NCBI GenBank assembly: GCA_028826165.1
Contig: JAPDFW010000055.1
Span: forward strand, 558,001-622,000
Source of the DNA: Anaeramoeba ignava BMAN
Lineage: Eukaryota; Protista; Anaeramoebae
Length of the DNA stretch: 64,000 bases
Reading direction: 5' to 3'
Shown in pieces: positions 44,701 to 63,177 of this stretch (positions within the stretch are counted from its first letter, which is position 1; each line of letters starts with the position of its first letter). The notes under the pieces are model-generated. The model saw only the letters and a list, made by a program, of their open reading frames with translations, was not told the origin of the DNA and searched no databases. Made by a program: the position numbers and the translations under genes.

Positions 44701-46330
44701 TGCACTTCTTTTTATAACATCATCAGGTACATCAGTTAAATGTTTTGAGATAATAGCAAGCATTTTTTCATATTCAATTTCTGTTTCACGAGTTTTTGGA
44801 TAATAAATTGTTACATCTTTTTCAAGTGAAATTATATTTCCTCCAAACTAATTTGAATTTTTATATAATATTAAGAAATAAATAATATAAATTTAGCAAA
44901 TAAAAAATTTGAAGAATAAAAGAAAAATGATGATATTAATACGCGAATTGAAAGTTCTCTTTCTTTTTTCTTTCTTTGTTCTCTCCTAAAAAAAAAGTGA
45001 ATTAAGAAATTGTTTTTAATTTTAATTTTAATTTTATAAATGAATATTAATTTTAATTTTAATTTTATAAATGAATTTTAATTTTAATTTTAATTTTAAT
45101 TTTAATTTTAATTTTAATTTTAATTTTTTTACTTTTTTCGAATTTGATCAATTTTTTCCTTTAATTGTTGTGGTTTTGTTTGTTGGTGTTTAGTTCCAAA
45201 TCCAGTTAATGGACCATCAAATCCAACAGCCATTCCTGATGGTTCATCACTTCTTGGTGGTCTTCTTTCAGGTTGCAGAACTAAATTTGCGTTCTAATAA
45301 TTTTAATTTTAATTTTAATTTTAATTTTAATTTTAATTTTAATTTTAATTTTAATTTTAATTTTAATTTTTAATTTTAATTTTAATTTTAAATTTAATTT
45401 TAATTTTAATTTTAATTTTATTTTTAATTTTAATTTTAATTTTAATTTTATAAATGAATTTTGATTTTAATTTTATATTTAATTTTAATTTTAATTTTAA
45501 TTTTAATTTTAATTTTAATATTGAATTTTAATTTTAATTTTAATTTTAATTTTAATTTTAATTTTAATTTTAAATTTAATTTTAATTTTAATTTTAATTT
45601 TAATTTTAATTTTAATTTTAATTTTAATTTTAATATTAATTTTAATATTAATTTTAATTTTAATTTTAATTTTAATTTAATTTTAATTTTTAATTTTAAT
45701 TTTAATTTTAATTTTTAATTTTAATTTTAATTTTAATTTTAATTTTAATTTTAATTTTAATTTTAATTTTTATTTTTTTAATTTTAATTTTTAATTTTAA
45801 TTTTTAATTTTTAATTTTAATTTTAATTTTAATTTTTAATTTTAATTTTAATTTTAATTTTAATTTTAATTTTAATTTTAATTTTTAATTTTAATTTTAA
45901 TTTTAATTTTAATTTTAATTTTAATTTTTAATTTTAATTTTAATTTTAATTTTAATTTTAATTTTAATTTTAATTTTTAATTTTATTTTAAAAATTTTTT
46001 AATTTTAATTTTAAATTTATTTTTTAATTTTAATTAAAAATTAATAGAAAAATGAAAAATTTTAATTTTATATTTAATTTTAATTTTAATTTTTTAATTT
46101 TTAATTTTAATTTTAATTTTTCTTTTTTTCCAAATAATAATTTTAAATTTTAATTTCAAAAATGAGTTATTTTAATTTTAATTATAATTTTAATTTTAAT
46201 TTTAATTTAAAAATTGTGTTCAAAAATCGTCAAATGAAAATGAAACTTTTATAATTTTGAATAGAAAACAAAGAAAATTAATTTATGTTTTTGTCTGTAT
46301 TCATAAAAATTTCCATCATTGCATAACCAT
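35703..46330 (-). CDS. SNRNP200: U5 snRNP 200 kDa helicase Brr2, ~14 exons
   Basis: YEYRQ|[18 protein letters not shown]-like IDAFWL, two Ski2-like cassettes ([14 protein letters not shown]; [14 protein letters not shown]), two Sec63 domains, [13 protein letters not shown]; junctions read manually. Confidence 0.96.
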
Positions 46331-46567
46331 TTTAAAAATTATTTAAAAAGAATTATAAAAGAAATTGATTTTAATAATAATTAATTAAAAATAAAATTTT
46401 AAATAATTTTATAAATAAAAAAATGAAAAATTAATAAAAATTTACATATTTTTTAATAAAAATTAGTAATTTAAAAATAATTTTTACTAATTTAATTAAT
46501 TTTTTTTTATTTTATTTTTTCATTTTTCTTCTTTTCCAAATAATTAAAACAAATAATTTTTAAATAA

Positions 46568-49122
46568 ATGAAACCAATACAAAGAGTTATTATTATTGGA
46601 TTTACACCTGAAACAGGAAATAAAATTGAATATTCTTATCCAAATTTAAATGAAAATCAAAAATCAAAAAAAAATGCATCAAATGAAAAATGGGTGAAAC
46701 TTTTATGTCTTTTTTTAACTTCCAATTAGAAAACAAACTGAAAAAAGAAATTATGTTTTTTTTTCAATTCCTCAACTTCCTTCTTCTTCTCAAAAAAATA
46801 TGTTACATTGCATTTCTTTATTTCAATCTATTCAAAATGAAGTAAATTTTATAATTAATTTTATAAATAATTTTATATTTAATTTTATATATAAATTTAT
46901 ATTTAATTTTATATTTAATTTTATATTTAATTTTATATTTAATTTTATAAATAATTTTATATTTAATTTTATATTTAATTTTATATTTAATTTTATAAAT
47001 AATTTTATAAATAATTTTATATTTAATTTTATATTTAATTTTATAAATAATTTTATAAATAATTTTATAAATAATTTTATAAATAATTTTATAAATAATT
47101 TTATAAATAATTTTATATTTAATTTTATAAATAATTTTATAAATAATTTTATAAATAATTTTATAAATAATTTTATATTTAATTTTATAAAAAAATTAAT
47201 AAAAGAATTTGGCTAAAAAAGAAAATTCAATTCTTCCAAAAAAAGCTATTTGTGTTTTATCAAACTTCCCCTTTTATGGTTCAATTAAATCCAAATTGGA
47301 AACTTTAACTCGTGGTTGGTCAAAAGAACAAGATTTTGCAAATCATCAATTTATTCAATCAGTTTATGAAACACTAAATAATACTTATTCAATTCCTCAA
47401 GAATCAAAAGAATTTAATAATTTTATTTATCAAGGTTTTTCTCCAAAGATTTTATTTAGAATTTTTGGAAGAGGTGTTCTTGTTATTATTAAAGCAATTT
47501 TATTGGAAAAAAAGATTATTTTATTTCATAATTCTCCAAGTGTTGTTTCTTTTCTTTCTTTAGCTTTGATTTCTTTAATTCCTAGTTTATTAGAAACATT
47601 TATTCCAGAAAAAGAAAAAGATAATTTAAAAAATCAAAATCAAAATCAAGATAAAAATCAAGATAAAAATAAAAATCAAATTCAAGATCAAAATCAAAAT
47701 CAAAATCAAAATAAAAATCAAAATGAAGATCAAAATCAAAATGAAGATAAAAATCAAAATGAAGATAAAAATCAAATTGAAAATCAAAATCAAAATGAAG
47801 ATAAAAATCAAAATCAAAATCAAGATAAAAATCAAAATCAAAATAAAAATCAAATTGAAGATAAAAATCAAAATCAAAATGAAGATAAAAATCAAAATGA
47901 AGATAAAAATCAAATTGAAGATAAAAATCAAAATCAAAATGAAGATAAAAATCAAATTGAAGATAAAAATCAAATTGAAAATAAAAATCAAAATCAAGAT
48001 AAAAATCAAAATCAAATTCAAAATCAAAATCAAATTCAAAATCAAGATAAAAATCAAGATAAAAATCAAATTCAAAACCAAAAAAAATCCAAAAATAAAT
48101 TTTTAAAAGATTTTGGATTACCTTTATACATCTTTTCTGAAAATAACCCTTTCCAACCCTTTCTTATTCACCATTTACTTAACTATTACGGTTCAAATAA
48201 ATTTCATAAATTCTTTCTTGGAGTAATCAATCCTCTTTTTTTCACAGAAAAATTCTCATCAGATATAAAAATCAAAATTGACCAAAATTTAGAAGGAAAT
48301 GTTTTGATAGAAAATAAAGATTTGAAAAAAATTCTCGCTTTAACTCAATCAGAAAAAAAATTTATTGACAACATCATTGAAACATTAAAAGCAAATAAAA
48401 CTCAAGAGAATAATTGGATTGGAAGTGATGATTGGATTCGACAAAAATTTCATGGATATTTCAAAAGATTTTTAAATGATTTTGCAACTCAAACTAATAT
48501 TTCTAAATATAAAAATACAGCACAAAAAAAAGATGTTTGGAAAAAAATTTTATTGAAACCTCAAGAAATAAATTCAGATAATTCAAATTCTCAAATTGAT
48601 TTAAACATTAGTGTTATTTCAAGATATAATACTCAATGGATTTTTAATTGGATGTTATCAAATAATTTTCGAAATTGGATCAAAAAAATACCTGATGATA
48701 TTGTTCCATTTATACAAGAAAAAAAAGAAATCCAGAATTTAATTAATCGAAGAGATGTTGATATTTTTGGAGAAATTGAGGAACAATTATCTTGGTTTGG
48801 AAAGAAAGTTGGAGCAACTTTTTCATCTGTTTTTAAAAAAAAAGATAAAGATAATGAAAAAGAAAAAGAAAAAGAAAAAGATAATGAAAAAGATAAAGAA
48901 AAAGATAATGAAAAAGAAAAAGATAAAGAAAAAGATAATGAAAAAGATAAAGAAAAAGATCCTTTGAAAATTCGTCAACAAAAATTAATTATACAATTAA
49001 TTAAATGTAAAGTTGATAAATCTATTGCTCAAAATGCTGTTGAAATTACAAATTCAAGTAATTTTGAAGATGTTCTTGATTGGATAATTGATCAAGAAAT
49101 GATACAAGAAGGTTATATTTGA
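46568..49122 (+). CDS. AVL9: AVL9-like DENN-domain protein with NQ/ED insertion and C-terminal UBA-like domain; 1 intron, frameshift near 46715
   Basis: VIIIGFTPETGNKIEYSYP, KAICVLSNFPFYGSIKSKL, IIKAILLEKKIILF, ALISLIP, FGLPLYIF, LTQSEKKFID, WIGSDDWIRQKFHGY. Confidence 0.85.
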
Positions 49123-49424
49123 AGTTTCTATTTTTTATTTTATTTCTATTTTAAAACAATAAAAACCAAATTTTAAATCAATTTTTTCAATAAATATAAA
49201 AAAAAAATGGAATAAATAAATAATAGAAATAAATATTAGAAATAAATATTAAATTAAAAATTAAAATAAAAAATTAAAATAAAACAGTATTTAAAGATGT
49301 TTTAATTAAAAAAAAAGAAATAAAAAAATTTTTTTTAAATAAATTTTTTTCATTTTTTTACTTTTATTAAAAAAAAAGCGAAAAAAAACTTAATTAAAAA
49401 ATTAAATTTAAATTAAATTAAAAA

Positions 49425-52368
49425 ATGGCAGATAGACAACAAGAAAGAGAAGATCTTATAAGTAATAAAATTATTGCAGAAATCAAAATTAAAAAATTAA
49501 AAGAATTTAGAGGAGAATTAAAAGAACATTTCAATTCAGTTGAAGAAGAATTAAAAAAACATGAAAATGATCCAATTAATTATATAACTCAACTTCAAAA
49601 AGGATTAAATGAAGCAAAATTTGCACAAGAATCACTTCATGAACCAATAGATCTTGGTGCACTTTTTTATGAATATCAACAAGGAAATCAAGAAATTTGT
49701 GATAATATTCTTGATGAACATAAACAAAAGTTATTAAAACAAATGCAACAAATTAAAAACAGAGGAGAATTAGTTTATCTTTATGGAAAAATATTAGAAG
49801 AACAAGCAAATTATGATGAAGAACAATATATTGAAAGACAACAAGAAAGAGAATTAGCAAAAAAACAAAGAAAAGAACAACTTGATAATGAAAATAACAA
49901 TAACAATAATAATAATAATGAAAAAGAAAAAGATGAAAAAGAAAAAGATGAGAAAAAAGATGAGAAAAAAGATGAAAAAAGAACCAGTTAAAAAAACTTG
50001 GAAAGAAAGACTTGAAGAACATAAAAAAGAATATTCTAAATTATGGGCTCCTAAAACAAAACAAGAAATTGAAGTTCCTGAAGAATATATTAATTCAATT
50101 TTTGATTTAATGGATCAAGAAATTTTAGAAATGGCAAGATTAAATGTTAAAAGTTTTATTGAAAATGAATTATTAGCACTTGTTCAAGAAGAAGAATTAA
50201 AATATGTTTTGAGTTTTATTCGTAAAAATATTCATATGCCTGGATTTTTTAGACAAAATGCATCTGGAATTCTTAGATCTGAATTAAAACTTTCTGAATG
50301 GACTGGTGCTTTAACAATTTTAATTTCTAAATTTAAAGAATTTAAATGGAATGAAATAACATCACTTAGAAGTATTTTTACAAGAAAAAGATTTAGAATA
50401 TTTTTGAAAGAAGATTTTATGACACTTGTTTTAACTAATTTAATTGGATTAAGATGGCAAATGAAATTAAAACAAATTTTAAGAACACTTCATCATTCTG
50501 GAATTAATTTCCCTTCTTTTGTTAATCATTCATCAGCAATTCAATACAGAAAACAAAAAGTACATTCATTATTTATGCCATTTTGTCCTGATAATTTATA
50601 TGATTATCAAAATGTTGATAATTATGGACAAACAAGATTTTCAACAAATCAAACACAAGGACCTGATTCTTTTCAAAAATTATTATGCCATTTAAATGGA
50701 GAATTATCATTTTTAAGAGCTGTTTTTCCAGAAAGATCATTAGCATTTTTTAGAACTGATATTAAAGATTATTTCCCAAGAATTCAACACAACACACTTC
50801 TTTATATATTAAAGAAAATAGGAGTTACAGATGATTGGATTGAATTTTTTAGAAAATTTCTTGAAGTTGTTGTTCATATTGAAGGAGAAACATACGTTTG
50901 TCAAAGAGGAATTCCATTAGATCACAGTCTTTCAATTTTATTTAGTGATTTAATGTTATGGTTAATGGATGTATCAGTATTTAAAAAAACTGATGTTGAA
51001 TTAATTAGAGCATTAGATGATATCTTCTTTATTACAGTTGATACTGAAAGAGCAACCAGAGCATTTAAAGAAATTGAAAACTTTTGTTCTAAAATGGGAT
51101 TTGAATTAAATTATGATAAAACTGGATATTCATTTAGTGATGGAAGTAAAATTGAAGAACTTGAAAACAAAACCAAAGAAATCAAATGGGGATTATTAAA
51201 ATTAAAAGATTGTGATTGGATAATAAGTGATGAAAGTTTAAAAGAAGTTCTTGATGGATTTAAAGATGCAATTTCATTTGATTCACCAGTTTTAACAATT
51301 ATCTCATTATGGAATAGTTATATTCATTATATTATTAAGAATTTAGGAATATTTGTTTATTTAGGAAAAGAACATCTTAATAATGTTTCTAAAAAGATCA
51401 AAGAAATTGAAAAAGAAATATTTGGAGAAAAAGGAATTGTTAAATTAATTAAAGAAAAAATATTAGAAAGATTTGGAGAAGGAAACATTAAAGATATTCC
51501 ATTAGGATTTATTTTCTTACCATTAGAATGTGGAGGACTTGGATTATTTCAACCTAATATTTACATTTACACATTCAAACAAAGTTCAGATTATAGAGTT
51601 GAAAAACCAACAACATTAAAACAATCAACAGAAGATCTTGGATTTGGATTATCACCATTTACACAATATGGAACAACATCATTATTACAACAACAAAATC
51701 AAATGTTTTCAAATCAATATGGAGGAGGATTTGGAGCGAAAAAATCATCATTTGGATTTGGGCCAAGATACACATCTTCATCAATGAAATCAACATCAAT
51801 GAAAGCAGTTCCTAAAATGATGGCTAAAAGAAAAGTATTTGGAAGAGCTAAATCCAAAAGTAAACCAATATTTGCCAAAATTGAATCAGAATCTGATGAA
51901 TATGAAGATGAATATGATGATAATGAAAAAGATATAAAAGATAAAAAAGGAGGAAAAGAAGAAAAAGAAGAAGAAGAATTAAAAGTGCCAGGAATTCCAG
52001 ATTTTTTTAATTGTCCTGAAATGTTATTAAATCAAGAATATGGATATTTTTATAATCAACTTCAACAACCATTAGATCAAAGTGGACCATCACATCATAA
52101 TGTTGATTTATCATCACAATATTCATATGAATATGGATATGGATATGGAGGAGGAGGAGGAAGATTTGGATATAGATCAAAAATGATGGCAAGAAGAAGA
52201 GCAAGACCAAGAACAACAACAGCAAGTTATACAACACCATATCATATTTGGTTATTCCATATTTATGATGATTTAAAAGATTTTGCAGGCAAACTTGATT
52301 ATCAACATCCTGATTTAATTCCATCAATTTTAATCAAACAAATCAAATCAAATCAAAGAAATTTATAA
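49425..52368 (+). CDS. rvt: rvt-family cellular reverse transcriptase-related protein (N-terminal coiled coil + RT + C-terminal domain); two ORFs separated by one extra A at ~49975-49980
   Basis: RT motifs TDIKDYFPRI.H, RGIPLDHSLS.LFSD, RALDDIFF, FELNYDKTG, IKWGLLKL; rvt-type blocks RFRIFLKEDF..LIGLRW, QKLL..LNGE, WNSY, LGKEHL, IPLGFIFLPLECGGLGL; no endonuclease, RNase H, integrase or gag. Confidence 0.88.
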
Positions 52369-52369
52369 T

Positions 52370-53930
52370 TTTCCAATTTACAATTTTCAATTCAATTTAC
52401 AATTTAAAATCAATAATTCTTTTCAATTCAATTTATAATTTAAAATCAATAATTCTTTTTAATTCAATTCTTTTTAATTCAATTTATAATTTAAAATTAA
52501 TAATTCTTTTTAATTCAATTTACAATTTAAAATTAATAATTCTTTTTAATTTAATTTATAATTTTAAATAATTCTTTTAATTCAATTTACAATTTAAAAT
52601 CAATAATTCTTTTTAAAATTAATAAAATTCTTTTTAATTTAATTTACAATTTAAAATTAATAATTTTAAAAATCAATAATTCTTTTCAATTTAATTTACA
52701 ATTTAAAATCAATAATTCTTTTAATTCAATTTATAATTTAAAATTAATATCTTTTTAATTTAATTTTAATTTAAAATTAATTCTTTTTAATTTAACAATT
52801 TAAAATTAATAATTCTTTTTAATTCAATTTACAATTTAAAATTAATAATTCTTTTTAATTTAATTTATAATTTAAAATTAATAATTCTTTTTAATTCAAT
52901 TTGAATTTAAAATTAATAATTCTTTTTAATTCAATTTATAATTTAAAATCAATAATTCTTTTTCAATTTAATTTATAATTTAAAATTAATAATTCTTTTT
53001 AATTCAATTTACAATTTAAAATTAATAATTCTTTTTAATTTAATTTATAATTTAAAATTAATAATTCTTTTTAATTTAATTTACAATTTAAAATTAATAA
53101 TTCTTTTTAATTCAATTTACAATTCAAAATTAATAATTCTTTTTAATTTAATTTAAATCAATAATTCTTTTCAATTCAATTTATAATTTAAAATCAATAA
53201 TTCTTTTCAATTCAATTTATAATTTAAAATCAATAATTCTTTTTAATTCAATTTACAATTTAAAATTAATAATTCTTTTTAATTTAATTTATAATTTAAA
53301 ATTAATAATTCTTTTCAATTTAATTTATAATTTAAAATTAATAATTCTTTTTAATTCAATTTACAATTTAAAATCAATAATTCTTTTTCAATTCAATTTA
53401 TAATTTAAAATTAATAATTCTTTTTAATTTAATTTATAATTTAAAATTAATAATTCTTTTTAATTTAATTTATAATTTAAAATTAATAATTCTTTTTAAT
53501 TTAATTTATAATTTAAAATCAATAATTCTTTTTAATTCAATTTATAATTTAAAATTAATAATTCTTTTTAATTTAATTTATAATTCAAAATCAATAATTC
53601 TTTTTAATTTAATTTACAATTTAAAATTAATAATTCTTTTTAATTCAATTTATAATTTAAAATTAATAATTCTTTTTAATTCAATTTATAATTTAAAATT
53701 AATAATTCTTTTCAATTTAATTTATAATTTAAAATTAATAATTCTTTTCAATTTAATTTTTATAATTTTTTAAAATTTATAATTTAAAATTAATAATTCT
53801 TTTTAATTCAATTTACAATTTAAAATCAATAATTCTTTTCAATTTAATTTATAATTTAAAATTAATAATTCTTTTTAATTCAATTTACAATTTAAAATCA
53901 ATTATTCTTTTCAATTCAATTTACAATTTA
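52370..53930. repeat. Tandem array of a 36-bp unit (AATTCTTTTTAATTCAATTTACAATTTAAAATTAAT), roughly 40+ copies
   Basis: Period measured between 52991 and 53027; variation mostly at a few C/T or C/A positions; no spacers. Confidence 0.9.
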
Positions 53931-54042
53931 ATAAAAACAAAATTCAAACAAAAATTTTTTTTAATTTTTTTTATTTTTCATTTTTTATTTTTCAAAAATA
54001 AATAAAAAATAAAAGTTTAAATTAAAAAAAATTAAATTAAAA

Positions 54043-56974
54043 ATGAATCAAGAAAATCAAAATCAAAATCAAAATCAAAATCAAAATCAAAATCAAAATC
54101 AAAATCAAAATCAAAATCAAAATCAAAATCAAAATCAAAATCAAAAGTAAAAAAATAAACAAAAAAAACAAAAAATAAAAAAAATTTTTTTTTCTTTTTA
54201 TTTCTTTATTAAATTAAAATTTAATTTATTTTAAACATTAAATCAATTCAAAAAACAAACAAAAAACACAAAAAAAAAAACAAAACAAATTTATTTTTAT
54301 TTTTAAATTATTTATTTTTTAATAATAATAAAAAAAACAGAAATCAAAATCAAAATCAAAATCAAAATCAAAATCAAAATCAAAATCAAAATCAAAATCA
54401 AAATCAAAATCAAAATCAAAATCAAAATCAATTTCAAAATGTAAGAAATTCAAGAAATTCAAAAAATCAAAAAGAAATCAAAAACCAAAATCAAAATCAA
54501 AATCAAAATCAAAACCAAAGAAATCAAAAATCAAAATCAAAATCAAAATCAAAACCAAAATCAAAATCAATTTCAAAATCAAAATCAAAATCAAAATCAA
54601 AAAGAAAAATCAAAATCAAAACCAAAAGAAATCAAAGAAATCAAAAGAAATTCAAAATCAAAATCGAAGAAATCCAAATCAAAATCAAAGAAATCCAAAT
54701 CGAAGTCCAAATAAAAGTCCAAATCAAAGAAATCAAAATCAAAATCAAAATCAAAATCAAAATCAAAATCAAAATCAAAATCAAAATAAACCAAAAACAC
54801 AAAAAGAAATTGCTCAAAAAGAATTTCGAAATTTTACATTTGAACTTCATAATGGATTAAGAAATAATGATATACCAAAATTAAATGATCTTTATAATAT
54901 TAAAGTTGTTGAATTATCAAAAATACAAGTTAGTTTATGGCCAAATACTCAAGAAATTCTTCAATTTATTCATAATATTTCTCAAAGTATATTTATTTAT
55001 TAAAATTAAAATTAAAATTAAAATTAAAAATTAAAATTAAAATTAAAATTAAAATTAAAATTAAAATTTATTAAAATTTAAAATTAAAATTAAAATTAAT
55101 ATTTAAAATTAAAATTAAAATTAAAAATAAAATTAATATTAAAATTAAAATTAAAATTAAAAATAAAAATTAAAATTAAAATTAAAATTCAAGACAAAAA
55201 ACAACCACAAGAAACACATGAACTTCTTCCACTTTTATATCAAGAATTATATTACCGATATATCTTTTCTAAAGAAAAACCATCATTAGAATATTATGTT
55301 AAATCATATTTAAATTATGAAGAATTATTTGAAAAAGTAAAACAACCACAAAATAAAAGAAGTATAAATTTACCGATAAATTGGTGTTGGGATATTATTG
55401 ATGAATTCATTTATCAATTTCAAAGCTTTTCAATTTTTACAAATCAATTAAAATATCCAAGAGATAAAAATGAAATTAATGAATTAACAACCAAATATAA
55501 AGATATTTGGAATCCAAGAAATGTTTTGAAAAGATTACAAAATCTTAGTCAAATATCTAAATTTGATGAATTACAAAATCCAGAAAAATTCAAAATTGAA
55601 AATTTATTAGGATATTTTTCAATGATTGGACAAATTTTAATTAATACACAAATTGGAGATTATAATCTTGCATTACAATATGCTAAAAATTTCAATTTAT
55701 TTGAAAGAGATTTTTATACAAGAGTATTAAGATGTAGTATGAGTTTACATTATAATGTTGGATTTTGCTATTTAATGACAAATCAATTTGTAAATGGAAT
55801 TAAACATTTTGCATCAATTTTAAGTTATTTTTCAAGAGTTAAACAAAATGATTTATTAGAATTTCAACAAGAAGCAATAATGAAAAAAGTCGATCAAATG
55901 TATTCATTACTTGCAATATGTTGGGTATTTGGATCAGATAAATTTTCTAAAATACCTGATATAATATTAGAAAATTTAGAATCAAAACATTCATCACAAA
56001 TTACAAGAATTAAGAATGGGTAAATATTAAATATTAATAATTAAAAATTAAAATTAAAAATTAGAATTAAAATTAATATTAAAATTAAAATTAAAATTAA
56101 AATTAAAATTAAAATTAAAATTAAAATTAAAATTAAAATTAAAAATTAAAATTAAAATTAAAAATTAAAATTAAAATTAAAATTAAAATTAAAAATCAAA
56201 ATTAAAATTAAAATTAAAATTAAAAATCAAAATTAAAATTAAAAATTAAAAATTAAAATTAAAATTAAAATTAAAATTAAAATTAAAATTAAAATTAAAA
56301 TTAAAATTAAAATTAAAAATTAAAATTAAAATTAAAATTAAAATTAAAATTAAAAATAAAAATTAAAAAAATTAAAATTAAAAATTAAAATTAAAATTAA
56401 ATTAAAATTAAAATTAAAAATTAAAAATTATATTTAAAATCAAAATTAAAATTAAAATTTAAATTAAAATTAAAATTATATTTAAAATAAAATAGAGAAG
56501 AAAGCATTAATTGAATTATTTTCATTATCACAAAAACAACAATATTTTAAAAAGCACAATTTTTAAAAGAAAACATGATTAAAAAGAAAATTATCAAATC
56601 AAATTGAATTATTTAAAAACAAAATGAGACCACATCTTGAAGCATTAAAACTTAAAAGAAATCTTGAAATGTATCAAAAAATGTTGAAATTTCTAAATTA
56701 GCAAAAAAACACAAACAAAAATGAAAAGAAAATTATTGAAGAATTATTATTATTAAAATCAAGAATTTTAGAAATTAATTTATATAAAAACAAAAATGAA
56801 AAAAATGAAAAAAATGAAGAAGAAGAAGAAATTAATAAATTAGATCAAGGTATTCAATTTTTAATTGAAAAACAAACAGTTAAAATTGAAGAAATCAAAA
56901 ATCAAAAGAAAATTGGAGCATATTTTATTTACCAAATTTCAAATTTATCAGATTTAAAACTTAATCAAATTTAA
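54043..56974 (+). CDS. EIF3L: Eukaryotic translation initiation factor 3 subunit L, multi-exon, NQ-rich N-terminus; last exon partly frameshifted
   Basis: LYQELYYRYIF..PSLE..SYLNY..LF, LPINWCWDIIDEFIYQFQSF, LGYFSMIG..GDYNLAL, YNVGFCYLM, DQMYSLLAI. Confidence 0.9.
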
Positions 56975-57141
56975 AATCAAAATTAAAATCAAAATCAAAA
57001 TTAAAATTAAAATCAAAATCAAAATCAAAATTAAAATAAAAATTAAAATAAAAATTAGAAGAAAAATTAGAAGAAAAAGCATTAAAATTTCATTTTTTTT
57101 TATTAAAAGGTTTTGGAAAAAATATCAAAAAAAAATTGAAT

Positions 57142-60100
57142 TTAAATTTGATTTGAATTTAAATTTGAATTTAAATTTGAATTTTGATTTAAATTTTGAG
57201 AAACAAATAAAGAAGAATTTGATTCAATTAATTCAATTTCATTTTTAAATTTTGATTTATTTTCTTCTGAAATTTCTTCACACCATAAATTTAAAGGTAA
57301 ACCTCCTTGTTTTTCATTTCTTTGATATTTTATATTCTTTTCTGAATCAAAATCAAATATATCAGCAACTCGACTTGAAACAATTTCAACAACATTTTTA
57401 AGAAATTGTGGTTCTTGTTTTGCTTTTTTAAGAAAATTTTCTTCATTTTCTAAAGATGAAAGTAATTGAATTTTTAAATCAATATCTAAATCTCCTAAAT
57501 TTTTTAAAACATCATCAATAAATTCTTCATCTAAAAGAAACATATCTTGCTTTAAAGAATTTAAAAATTGTCTAAATTTTTTAAAATCAAAATTTAAATA
57601 TTAATTTAAATATTTATTTAAAAATTGATTTAAACATTAATTTAAATATTGATTTAAATACTAATTTAAAAATTAATTTTAATATTAATATAAATATAAA
57701 TTTAAATATTAATTTAAATATTAATTTAAATATTAATTTAAATATTAATTTAAATATTGATTTTTAAATATTAATTTAAATATTTAATTTAAATATTAAA
57801 GAATTTAAAACGACAAAAATGATTTTATATATTATTTTAAAATTTTATATAATAAATTTCTTGTATTTTAAATATTTAAATATAAATATTAATTTAAAAG
57901 GCATTTGTTGATTTATTTATTGATTAAAAATTATAATTTAAAAATCTTTTGTTGATTTTAAATATGTTTGATTTTTTAAATCATTTGTTTTAAATAATAT
58001 ATATATTGATTTAAATATTCAATTTAAATATTAATTTAAATATTAATATAAATATTTATTTTAAATATTTTTATATATTTTTGATTTAAATATTCAATTT
58101 AAATATTAATTTAAATATTAATTTAAATATTAATTTAAATATTGATTTAAATATTGATTTAAATATTTATTTAAATAAAGATTTAAAAATTTTTAAATAT
58201 TAATATAAATATTAATTTAAATATTAATTTTAAACATTAATTTAAATATTAATTTTATACTTTCATTAATTTAAATATTAATTTTAAATATTAATTTAAA
58301 TATTTTACAATTTAAATATTTTATATAAAATATTAATTTAAATATTCATATAAAATATTAATTTGAAATATTAATTTAAATATTGATTTAAATATTAATT
58401 TAAATATTGACGCCAAAATATAAATTTTAAATATTTGATTTATATATTAATTTAAATATTAATTTAAATATTCATTTAAATATTAATTTAAACATAAATT
58501 TAAATATGGAATTTTTAAATATTTTTAAATATGAAATTTTTAAATATTGATTTAAATATTAATTTAAACATTAATTTTTTAATTTAAATATTAATTTTAA
58601 ATATTGAATTTTAAATATTAATTTAAATATTAATTTTATATATTTTTTAAATTTAATTTTAAATTTAATTTTAAATATTGATTTAAATATTCATTTAAAT
58701 ATTGATTTTAAATATTAATTTAAACATTAATTTAAATATTTATTTAAATATTAATTTAAACATTGATTTAAATATAAATTTAAATATTTTATATAAATAT
58801 TAATTTCTACAGTCGATCTTGAGAAAGAATTCCTAAACGACAAAAATGATAATGAAAATTTTCAGGAAATGGATAATAAAGTTCTTGTATTGCAATATAT
58901 AAATTCCTTAATACATAAAAGGCATTTTGTTGATATTTTTCAAGTGTAAAATTATGTTCTAAATCTTTTGTTGATTTTTCTTGTTGATTTTGATTATCAT
59001 CTGTTGTTGTTGTAAAAGTGGAATCAAAACTATTTTGTTCATTAATATTAACAAAATCATCATCCAAACTATTTTCTGCATTTGATTTATCTACTTGAGT
59101 TTTATTTTTAGATGAATTTTTTTTTGCATTTCTTTTTGGAATGGGTTTGACAATATATTTTTTTGCAAATTCATTTCTTTGTTCCAAAATGACTTTTTTA
59201 ATAATTTTCCGACTTGGTTGTTTAATTTCGTTTTCCATTGATAAAGACTGCAAATTTTTCCAACTTTTGATATTTGTAATCTCATAATTTTTGCCTTGAA
59301 TTTGGACACTTAATAAAACACTTTTCAAAACTGAAAATAATGAATTAACTGAATCATTCATACAATTTAAAAAAATATTAATCAATTTGATCACAAATAT
59401 TTTTTGATTCCTTGTTCTTATTGGGAAATATTGCATAATATGGTCTGAAATAATTCTTGCAATCATTTTTCTTTGATTTAAAATTTGATGTCCTGGCCAA
59501 AAATAATTTTTATCTTCTATAAATTGATCAAATAAATCATCACCTTCCTTTTTTTTCTTGTTTGGTGTATCTTCAAATTCATTCACAAGAGCAATATATG
59601 GAATTTTTCGAAATTTTAAATATGAAAATCTTTTACAAGGTTTGAATCCTATTTTTGAATTTGTTGATTCTTGGATTTGAATTTTACGAATATTTAAATC
59701 ATGACTTGTTTGGATTCCTTTTTTAAGTTTTTTAACCTATGAATATAAATTTTGATTTAATTTTTGATTTAATTTTGATTTTGATTTAATTTTGATTTAA
59801 TTTTGATTTAATTTTAATTTAAATTTGATTTAAATTTGATTTAAATTTGATTTAAATTTGATTTAATTTTGATTTAATTTTGATTTAATTTTGATTTAAT
59901 TTTGATTTAATTTTGATTTAAATTTTAATTTAAATTTGATTTAAATTTGATTTAAATTTGATTTAATTTTGATTTAATTTTGATTTTGATTTAATTTTGA
60001 TTTAATTTTGATTTAATTTTGATTTTGATTTGGATTTAAAATTGATTTAATTTTGATTTAAATTTAAATTTAATTTTGATTTAATTTTGATTTAATTTTG

Positions 60101-62978: not shown

Positions 62979-63177
62979 TTTTGAAATAATGAAAGAAAGA
63001 AAAGAAAGAAAAAATGTGAAAAAAAAAATGAATTTTGAAAATAAAAAAAACTAAAAAAATTTTTTGATTTGATTTTTATTTTAATTCTAATTTTAATTTT
63101 GATTTTAATTTTGATTTTGATTTTAATTTTGATTTTGATTTTAATTTTGATTTTAATTTTAATTTTAATTTTTAATT

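Follow-up and report, generated by a model that had tools for sequence, protein, structure and literature searches.

What is an intronless reverse transcriptase (RT) gene doing between the genes for Avl9 and eIF3L in the anaerobic protist Anaeramoeba ignava: is it a mobile element, a relic, or a gene of the host? We considered this question for a window of 64,000 nucleotides (the whole stretch of DNA that was analysed; contig C56:558001-622000, with positions given in the window unless a contig is named). The gene, which we call rvtA, is made of two overlapping + strand frames at 49425-52368 that jointly code for a protein of ~980 amino acids. A first reading of the letters by themselves (the original prediction) took it for a non-mobile RT of the rvt class in an anaerobic protist, and our searches agree. 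Judging from its sequence, rvtA is a real and apparently functional member of this described class, of the bacterial sequence type. Our explanation as a whole, to which we give a probability of about 80%, is that rvtA is a chromosomal, non-mobile rvt (UG37) gene for a single protein of ~980 amino acids, that its split into two frames is an assembly error, and that its enzymology would be rvt-like, by analogy. The two open reading frames (ORFs) are:

49425-49991, + strand: ORF1, 188 amino acids; the predicted N-terminal all-helical (coiled-coil-type) domain of the rvt protein, from the RT_UG37 match, the alignment and the AlphaFold2 model.
49882-52368, + strand: ORF2, 828 amino acids, in the +1 frame relative to ORF1.

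Both ORFs belong to the same RT family. The PADLOC profile RT_UG37 matches ORF2 with 286.5 bits (E = 9.2e-86), and the next RT class, UG4, reaches 64.8 bits; the margin over every other RT class is more than 220 bits. The same profile matches ORF1 (E = 1.2e-12, profile positions 5-136). UG37 of the prokaryotic RT classification has been equated with rvt (Mestre et al. 2022, PMC9226505); the same authors summarise rvt genes as non-mobile and present in single copy, with protein-primed synthesis and a coiled coil at the N-terminus (PMC9226505). The Pfam domain RVT_1 is found in ORF2 with 35.5 bits (curated cut-off 29.6; E = 1e-8), with a match that begins only at profile position 70. Searches of PDB chains and NCBIfam gave matches that are confined to the palm and that come from group II intron, retron and DRT-type RTs (E ~1 for telomerase reverse transcriptase, TERT). 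So, when rvtA is compared with the RT classes by profile and by structure, as had been proposed for it, RT_UG37 is the best match over the whole length and the structural matches are to generic RT folds.

An exhaustive HMMER search of 1.8 billion representatives found 594 relatives, most of them 770-930 amino acids long and aligned over ORF2 residues 45-590. The top-scoring relatives are bacterial (28-32% identity). Named relatives come from oomycetes, chytrids, Mucoromycota, Basidiomycota, Gonapodya, the amoebozoan Vermistella, and Anaeramoeba flamelloides, with the fungal and oomycete matches being from Amanita, Malassezia, Calcarisporiella, Nowakowskiella, Lagenidium, and Globisporangium. 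When we searched genome records with a 9-sequence bacterial alignment, relatives were found in six bacterial phyla (Chloroflexota, Planctomycetota, Myxococcota, Actinomycetota, Bacteroidota, and Armatimonadota), and three further relatives (P0003 and P0005 among them) sit in clearly bacterial gene neighbourhoods. Word-index searches with the whole of ORF2, with the family alignment, or with residues 95-590 were empty; low-complexity, AT-biased words are the probable cause, so we give this result no weight.

Is the active site intact? All of the catalytic residues are present (D293, D379, D380, N410, and K413), and each is invariant across the family. The motifs quoted in the original prediction were all found at the coordinates that we checked. 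The features of the main coding part are:

49981-52368, + strand: main coding part in the +1 frame, 795 amino acids plus stop, with an N-terminal extension, RT fingers/palm, thumb, and C-terminal rvt domain.
50395-50457, + strand: block RIFLKEDF..LIGLRW, putative region of RT motifs 1-2 (family consensus KWRxxLDEDL...GxRW).
50746-50784, + strand: RT motif A/3, FFRTDIKDYFPRI (TDIKDYF); D293 is invariant in the family alignment.
50902-50946, + strand: RT motif B/4, QRGIPLDHSLSILFS (RGIPLDHSLS), from sequence comparison.
51001-51036, + strand: RT motif C/5, LIRALDDIFFIT (RALDD), with the catalytic Asp-Asp; R376, D379, and D380 are invariant.
51097-51132, + strand: RT motif D/6, GFELNYDKTGYS (LNYDKTG); N410 and K413 are invariant.
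51181-51204, + strand: RT motif E/7, IKWGLLKL (WGLL); W436 and L439 are nearly invariant.
51505-51555, + strand: family-specific GGLG block, GFIFLPLECGGLGL / GFIFLPLECGGLGLFQP, in the thumb/C-terminal region; G551, G552, and L553 are nearly invariant.
51601-52221, + strand: lineage-specific G/K/S/E/Y-rich insertions, predicted to be disordered (AlphaFold2), around one short conserved helical piece.
52240-52335, + strand: C-terminal family motif YHIW...FAGKL...DLIPSILI (consensus YWxW..YG...FGxFRFLxxELVPxQLI); P814 is invariant.

We infer motifs 1-2 from the resemblance of the first block to the family consensus. Between LIGLRW (ORF2 residues 187-192) and TDIKD (residue 292) lies a spacer of 99 residues (loop 2a). 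Loop 2a characterises rvt, and a spacer of about this length fits it (PMC5718144). The GGLG block takes the form (Y/F)WP.TAGGLGL in most relatives. Motif C varies by group. Fungi and oomycetes have xHDD, bacteria have x[VIL]DD, and the Anaeramoeba genes read ALDD, VVDD, or CVDD. The first reading had remarked that ALDD is unlike the fungal LHDD type; this is correct for the whole fungal and oomycete clade, and the residue that precedes DD is aliphatic in bacteria and in Anaeramoeba. Past the RT core, the conserved C-terminal domain is also present, interrupted by the disordered insertions; relatives are ~150-200 amino acids shorter than rvtA. The AlphaFold2 model of the main coding part has a predicted TM-score (pTM) of 0.81. 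Its per-residue confidence (pLDDT) is above 90 for residues 30-540 and below 50 at model residues 541-606, 618-659, and 721-747.

The N-termini of 30 family members can be aligned with ORF1, which is 32% identical to the N-terminus of a paralogue, rvtB, on contig C122. In the AlphaFold2 model of ORF1 (pLDDT 91.8), helices span residues 2-45 and 89-187. The N-terminal region, for which the original prediction proposed a coiled coil, is homologous to the N-terminus of the family, with long helices predicted.

The paralogue rvtB (C122:70679-73286, - strand; P0014) codes for 795 amino acids, with VVDD at motif C, and has two apparent introns. Its C-terminus is nearly identical to the bacterial consensus. 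The orthologue of rvtB in A. flamelloides (P0150) is intronless, lies on a 13.8-Mb scaffold, and is present in a transcriptome-derived protein set.

Where does rvtA belong within the family? In a FastTree phylogeny of 150 rows, rvtA, rvtB, and the A. flamelloides protein were grouped (support 89). In that tree, Anaeramoeba lies beside the bacteria, Gonapodya and Vermistella come next, and the fungi and oomycetes are furthest. A site-heterogeneous tree of 70 rows (posterior mean site frequency model, PMSF) separated fungi, oomycetes, Gonapodya, and Vermistella from bacteria plus Anaeramoeba (support 98), with the base of the latter side unresolved. We also compared placements by approximately unbiased (AU) tests in IQ-TREE, with 40 rows and LG+F+G4, which is simpler than the mixture model; the LG tree likewise grouped rvtA, rvtB, and the A. 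flamelloides orthologue. Joining Anaeramoeba to the fungal/oomycete group was rejected (p = 0.0005). Neither Anaeramoeba as a single clade (p = 0.44) nor a split of all bacteria from all eukaryotes (p = 0.58) was rejected, and the latter had the best likelihood. These trees are unrooted. The Anaeramoeba genes branch outside all of the sampled bacterial clades, and the motif C types agree with a placement beside bacteria. rvtA appears, then, to be of the bacterial type, with Anaeramoeba as the eukaryotic lineage that is nearest to bacteria in the unrooted tree.

Did Anaeramoeba acquire the gene from bacteria? A bacterial transfer into Anaeramoeba would have to be ancient, before the duplication that separated rvtA from rvtB and before the split of A. 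ignava and A. flamelloides. This is the alternative that survives best, and we consider it possible, but we lean against it. In its favor, the best HMMER matches are bacterial (with P0003 and P0005 in bacterial neighbourhoods), and motif C, the TAGGLGL block, and the paralogue's C-terminal GTFRFLITELVPMQL are all of the bacterial type. The PMSF split and the rejection of the fungal/oomycete placement also point this way. Transfer from prokaryotes to Anaeramoeba has been reported to be very frequent (PMC11550330), and rvtA has no introns. However, the Anaeramoeba genes are nested in no bacterial clade, and the tree with the best likelihood, which splits bacteria from eukaryotes, is just as compatible with an early-branching eukaryotic rvt inherited vertically, or with a transfer that went from eukaryotes to bacteria; the lack of a root also counts against reading the tree as a transfer into Anaeramoeba. 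The GC content of rvtA is 23-29%, which is similar to host coding DNA. This host-like composition, the deep paralogue with introns, and the A. flamelloides orthologue argue against a recent transfer. The original prediction had described the gene as intronless and perhaps horizontally acquired; the trees give no support to this idea, as the split of all eukaryotes from all bacteria fits equally well. From these trees, horizontal transfer into Anaeramoeba is neither shown nor excluded.

A bolder proposal is that the Anaeramoeba genes form the eukaryotic branch directly beside all bacterial rvt and have kept the active-site and C-terminal motifs of the bacterial type. We regard it as doubtful, and even less likely is an accompanying suggestion that the linker with the A-runs (described below) is a slippage switch. 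If the proposal is true, then Anaeramoeba rvt marks either the point of a single interdomain transfer or an early eukaryotic state of rvt.

Is the reading frame intact? The two ORFs meet at this feature:

49953-49980, + strand: frame break at the ORF1/ORF2 junction, with three A-runs (A6 GATGAG A6 GATG A6) in a Lys/Glu/Asp-rich low-complexity linker.

The junction reads GATGAG-A6-GATGAG-A6-GATG-A6-GAACC. Joining ORF1 to ORF2 requires a net change of -1, +2, or +5 bases, so the gene is in frame if the lengths of the A-runs sum to 17, 20, or 23. (Removing one A, as the first reading did, is one of these solutions and yields the protein of ~980 amino acids.) The A-runs are 6/6/6 in the window (sum 18), 6/5/8 in a copy on C101 (sum 19), and 5/5/7 in an inverted copy near the end of C56 (sum 17, in frame). 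Read-derived Logan contigs from two studies have an additional AA or AAAAA after 49974, in the last run, and either +2 or +5 A restores the frame provided that the other two runs are as assembled. The assembly was built from Nanopore R9 reads with Racon, Nanopolish, and two rounds of Pilon (PMC11550330). With such a procedure, a duplicated and AT-rich region would be expected to contain homopolymer errors. We also rejected an intron as the cause of the break, as it offers no GT...AG interval of plausible length. The frame break is most likely a homopolymer-length assembly error and not a feature of the gene, and we consider a real frameshift to be unlikely. We conclude that rvtA is apparently intact and codes for about 980 amino acids. 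Separately, contigs from one run (X3, kind unknown) span the gene body without its flanks, which hints at RNA; we do not count this as evidence.

The copies of rvtA in the genome bear on both its integrity and its mobility. Besides the window's rvtA, there is a copy at C101:230340-232772 (98% protein identity), the inverted copy near the end of C56, and the 28% identical paralogue rvtB on C122. C101 ends in 8.3 kb (C101:229580-237904) that match window positions 49152-58306, with rvtA, a 36-bp tandem array, and eIF3L, at 87-96% identity. Upstream of the shared segment, C101 has a Ras-family GTPase gene and a VIT-VWA gene in place of Avl9. At the end of C56 lies an inverted duplication of 11 kb (window positions 46064-57104 versus window-equivalent 63040-73827; 89% identity) with a 5.9-kb non-repeated spacer. 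Its arms carry Avl9, rvtA, the 36-bp array, and eIF3L, and the outer arm runs from window position 63040 to C56:631856. rvtA was duplicated only within larger segments that include host genes, so it was not copied by retrotransposition. (eIF3L is also apparently present in more than one copy.) Many dispersed copies with target-site duplications, which the original prediction would have taken as a sign of a retrotransposon, are not what the genome holds: its copies are segmental duplications with eIF3L.

Between the window and C101 copies, ORF2 has 14 synonymous and 3 non-synonymous differences, and ORF1 has 3 synonymous and 0 non-synonymous differences. All 3 of the non-synonymous differences fall in the insertions at 51601-52221. 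Outside the A-runs, the copies differ in length by one in-frame 18-bp repeat unit, and their 2.9 kb are otherwise free of stops and indels. The excess of synonymous differences implies purifying selection on the whole reading frame.

Several observations weigh against our explanation. First, rvtA is not single-copy, unlike the textbook rvt gene; single copy is a descriptive trait of the family, though, and not a structural requirement. Copy number, which was to be checked according to the original prediction, gave a mixed answer: duplication occurred only together with eIF3L, but there are two good copies, a poor inverted one, and a distant paralogue. Second, both of the well-assembled copies (the window and C101) are out of frame as assembled. 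Third, the read contigs start inside the A-rich stretch, and none of them bridges ORF1 and ORF2. Fourth, no record that contains the window copy is listed as RNA.

Could these genes be decaying pseudogenes? The frameshifts would then be real, with separate inactivation of each duplicated copy, and rvtB, the distant paralogue, would be the only functional gene. Such decay would fit the finding that the window and C101 copies are both broken in the same A-rich linker. It would also fit the inverted copy, which has many indels and whose substitutions are spread evenly over codon positions (33/27/35). But decay does not fit the excess of synonymous differences in both ORFs, or the absence of other stops and indels between the window and C101 copies (save for the in-frame repeat unit). 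The break is confined to homopolymers that vary in every copy, and read contigs carry lengths that restore the frame. In the outer arm of the inverted duplication, indels and substitutions become denser toward the end of the contig, as would result from poor polishing. We read the outer arm as a poorly polished or decayed copy, and the inverted duplication may be real, segmental in origin and badly polished, or assembly may have created part of it. We consider it improbable that rvtA is a pseudogene.

Another way to explain the break is programmed recoding. Transcriptional slippage or +1 ribosomal frameshifting at the A-runs would set the ratio of a 188-amino-acid helical protein to the full-length polymerase. 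The break does lie in A-runs, and polymerase slippage could occur on runs of the length found in C101 and the read contigs (8 or 11 A); recoding would account for both good copies being out of frame. Yet no relative is split at this place, and the linker is variable and low-complexity. The run lengths differ between copies, so there is no conserved recoding signal, and Nanopore homopolymer error is the simpler account. We think that recoding is very improbable, and we prefer to explain the break as an assembly error.

Is rvtA part of a mobile element, or some other kind of RT? At the locus, we found no long terminal repeat (LTR), target-site duplication, endonuclease, RNase H, or gag. Pfam identified no domain in rvtA other than RVT_1, Rfam had no match at the locus (and no intron RNA), and no long direct repeats flank the gene, only low-complexity tandem arrays. 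The claim that mobile-element parts are absent therefore holds, and the inclusion of eIF3L in the copies agrees with it. The solved folds nearest to the model are those of LINE-1 ORF2p, R2, DRT9, and group II intron RTs, at 10-15% identity. In our reading of the model, these matches reflect the generic RT fold, and the descriptions of these structures do not mention rvt. Protein-language features of the RT core scored 0.91-0.92 against fungal and arthropod telomerase clusters.

Three kinds of RT were rejected as candidates. A retrotransposon (non-LTR, LTR, or Penelope-like) was rejected as the locus is without endonuclease, RNase H, gag, terminal repeats, or dispersed solo copies. Telomerase was rejected as there is no match to Telomerase_RBD, TERT chains match with E ~1, and A. 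ignava has separate TERT genes, which are listed in the supplement of PMC11550330. Motifs B-E (50900-51210) look like TERT by eye, and this likeness was rejected on the sequence and profile scores and the separate TERT genes. A group II intron RT or maturase was rejected as TIGR04416 reached 48.9 bits (cut-off 300), in the palm only, and Rfam was empty. That rvtA is a member or remnant of a mobile retroelement (non-LTR, Penelope-like, or group II intron), or a divergent telomerase, is hardly credible: the nearest folds, the TERT-like protein-language features, and the several genomic copies might suggest it, but the folds are generic, the copies are segmental duplications, the TERT scores are negligible next to separate TERT genes, and the locus lacks a maturase, Telomerase_RBD, and the other parts, repeats, and intron RNA just named.

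What surrounds the gene? The neighbouring features are:

47209-49122: upstream neighbour Avl9 (Pfam E = 2e-42).
52384-53931, no strand: 36-bp AT-rich tandem array of 42.7 copies (Tandem Repeats Finder), starting 16 bp past the stop codon of rvtA.
55526-56023: exon of the multi-exon downstream neighbour eIF3L (Pfam family Paf67; E = 2e-37).

Both flanking genes that the original prediction had named, Avl9 and eIF3L, were thus matched by Pfam. The DNA of the window is extremely AT-rich, with a GC content of 20-29% in coding sequence and often below 10% in intergenic sequence. The 36-bp array lies downstream of every copy of rvtA (in the window, on C101, and in the inverted copy on C56), and it belongs to the duplicated segment. 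We consider the array to be context, and its position does not imply that it is part of the gene. Between the array and the first recognisable exon of eIF3L, at 53990-55190, there are hexanucleotide microsatellites (AAAATC, AAATCA, and ATTAAA; up to 72 units).

The Avl9 gene has a long in-frame insertion of Asn/Gln/Asp/Lys hexapeptide repeats (47600-48150) and a Lys/Glu/Asp-rich tail (48800-48970). These low-complexity expansions are of the same kind as those in the linker and the C-terminal insertions of rvtA. In the spacer of the inverted repeat, an ORF of 259 amino acids (58807-59586, - strand) has a sub-threshold Pfam match to the C-terminus of gamma-secretase-activating protein (26.4 bits; cut-off 27).

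What might the protein do? For rvtA itself, our results show that it belongs to the family, has an intact active site, is under purifying selection, and lacks mobile-element parts; its enzymology and cellular role we infer from reports on Neurospora and bacterial rvt. Blocking protein synthesis strongly induces RVT of Neurospora, a non-essential protein that is robustly active as a terminal transferase (PMC3520738). In bacterial rvt, multimerisation is by the coiled coil, and protein priming depends on the C-terminal domain (PMC9226505). By analogy, the N-terminal helices of the rvtA protein may mediate its multimerisation, and the protein may add nucleotides, in a protein-primed and largely template-independent manner, onto itself or onto the end of a nucleic acid. 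If so, rvtA would serve a stress-responsive function for the host rather than retrotransposition.

How does rvtA compare with its relatives? It is like rvt/UG37 in its whole-length architecture (N-terminal helical domain, long spacer between motifs 2 and A, GGLG block, and C-terminal motif), in being chromosomal, and in having no transposon parts. It differs in copy number: it belongs to a block that was duplicated segmentally and exists in two to three nearly identical copies, and there is also a deep paralogue. It carries two lineage-specific disordered insertions (~190 amino acids) in its C-terminal domain, and its activity is presumed by analogy. The fungal and oomycete genes, such as RVT of Neurospora crassa, are of the same family and have the same domain order, but they have xHDD where rvtA has ALDD, and their placement together with Anaeramoeba was rejected. 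With bacterial rvt, rvtA shares the aliphatic-DD form of motif C and the TAGGLGL-type block. Bacterial rvt proteins are said to have been studied biochemically by Yushenova and Arkhipova in 2018, with protein priming and multimerisation reported. In contrast to the bacterial genes, rvtA has a eukaryotic host, eukaryotic neighbours, and extreme AT content, and it branches outside the sampled bacterial clades. Finally, rvtB and its A. flamelloides orthologue are of the same family and group with rvtA, but they are distant from it (28% identity), have VVDD or CVDD at motif C, and are without the large C-terminal insertions, and rvtB has introns.

At these loci, the public annotation has truncated or fragmented gene models (745, 205, and 116 amino acids) where there should be one protein of ~980 amino acids. 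Beyond host range and annotation, the finding is ordinary, as the rvt family, its architecture, and its non-mobility have been known since 2011, when Gladyshev and Arkhipova reportedly described them. In the literature that we searched, we found no link between Anaeramoeba and rvt. An anaerobic, metamonad-related protist with two deep rvt paralogues of the bacterial type extends the known host range of the family. rvt is the only class of RT known to occur as a host gene in both bacteria and eukaryotes. The Anaeramoeba lineage, which lies between the bacterial and the fungal/oomycete rvt genes, can help to root the family and to ask which way it passed between domains.

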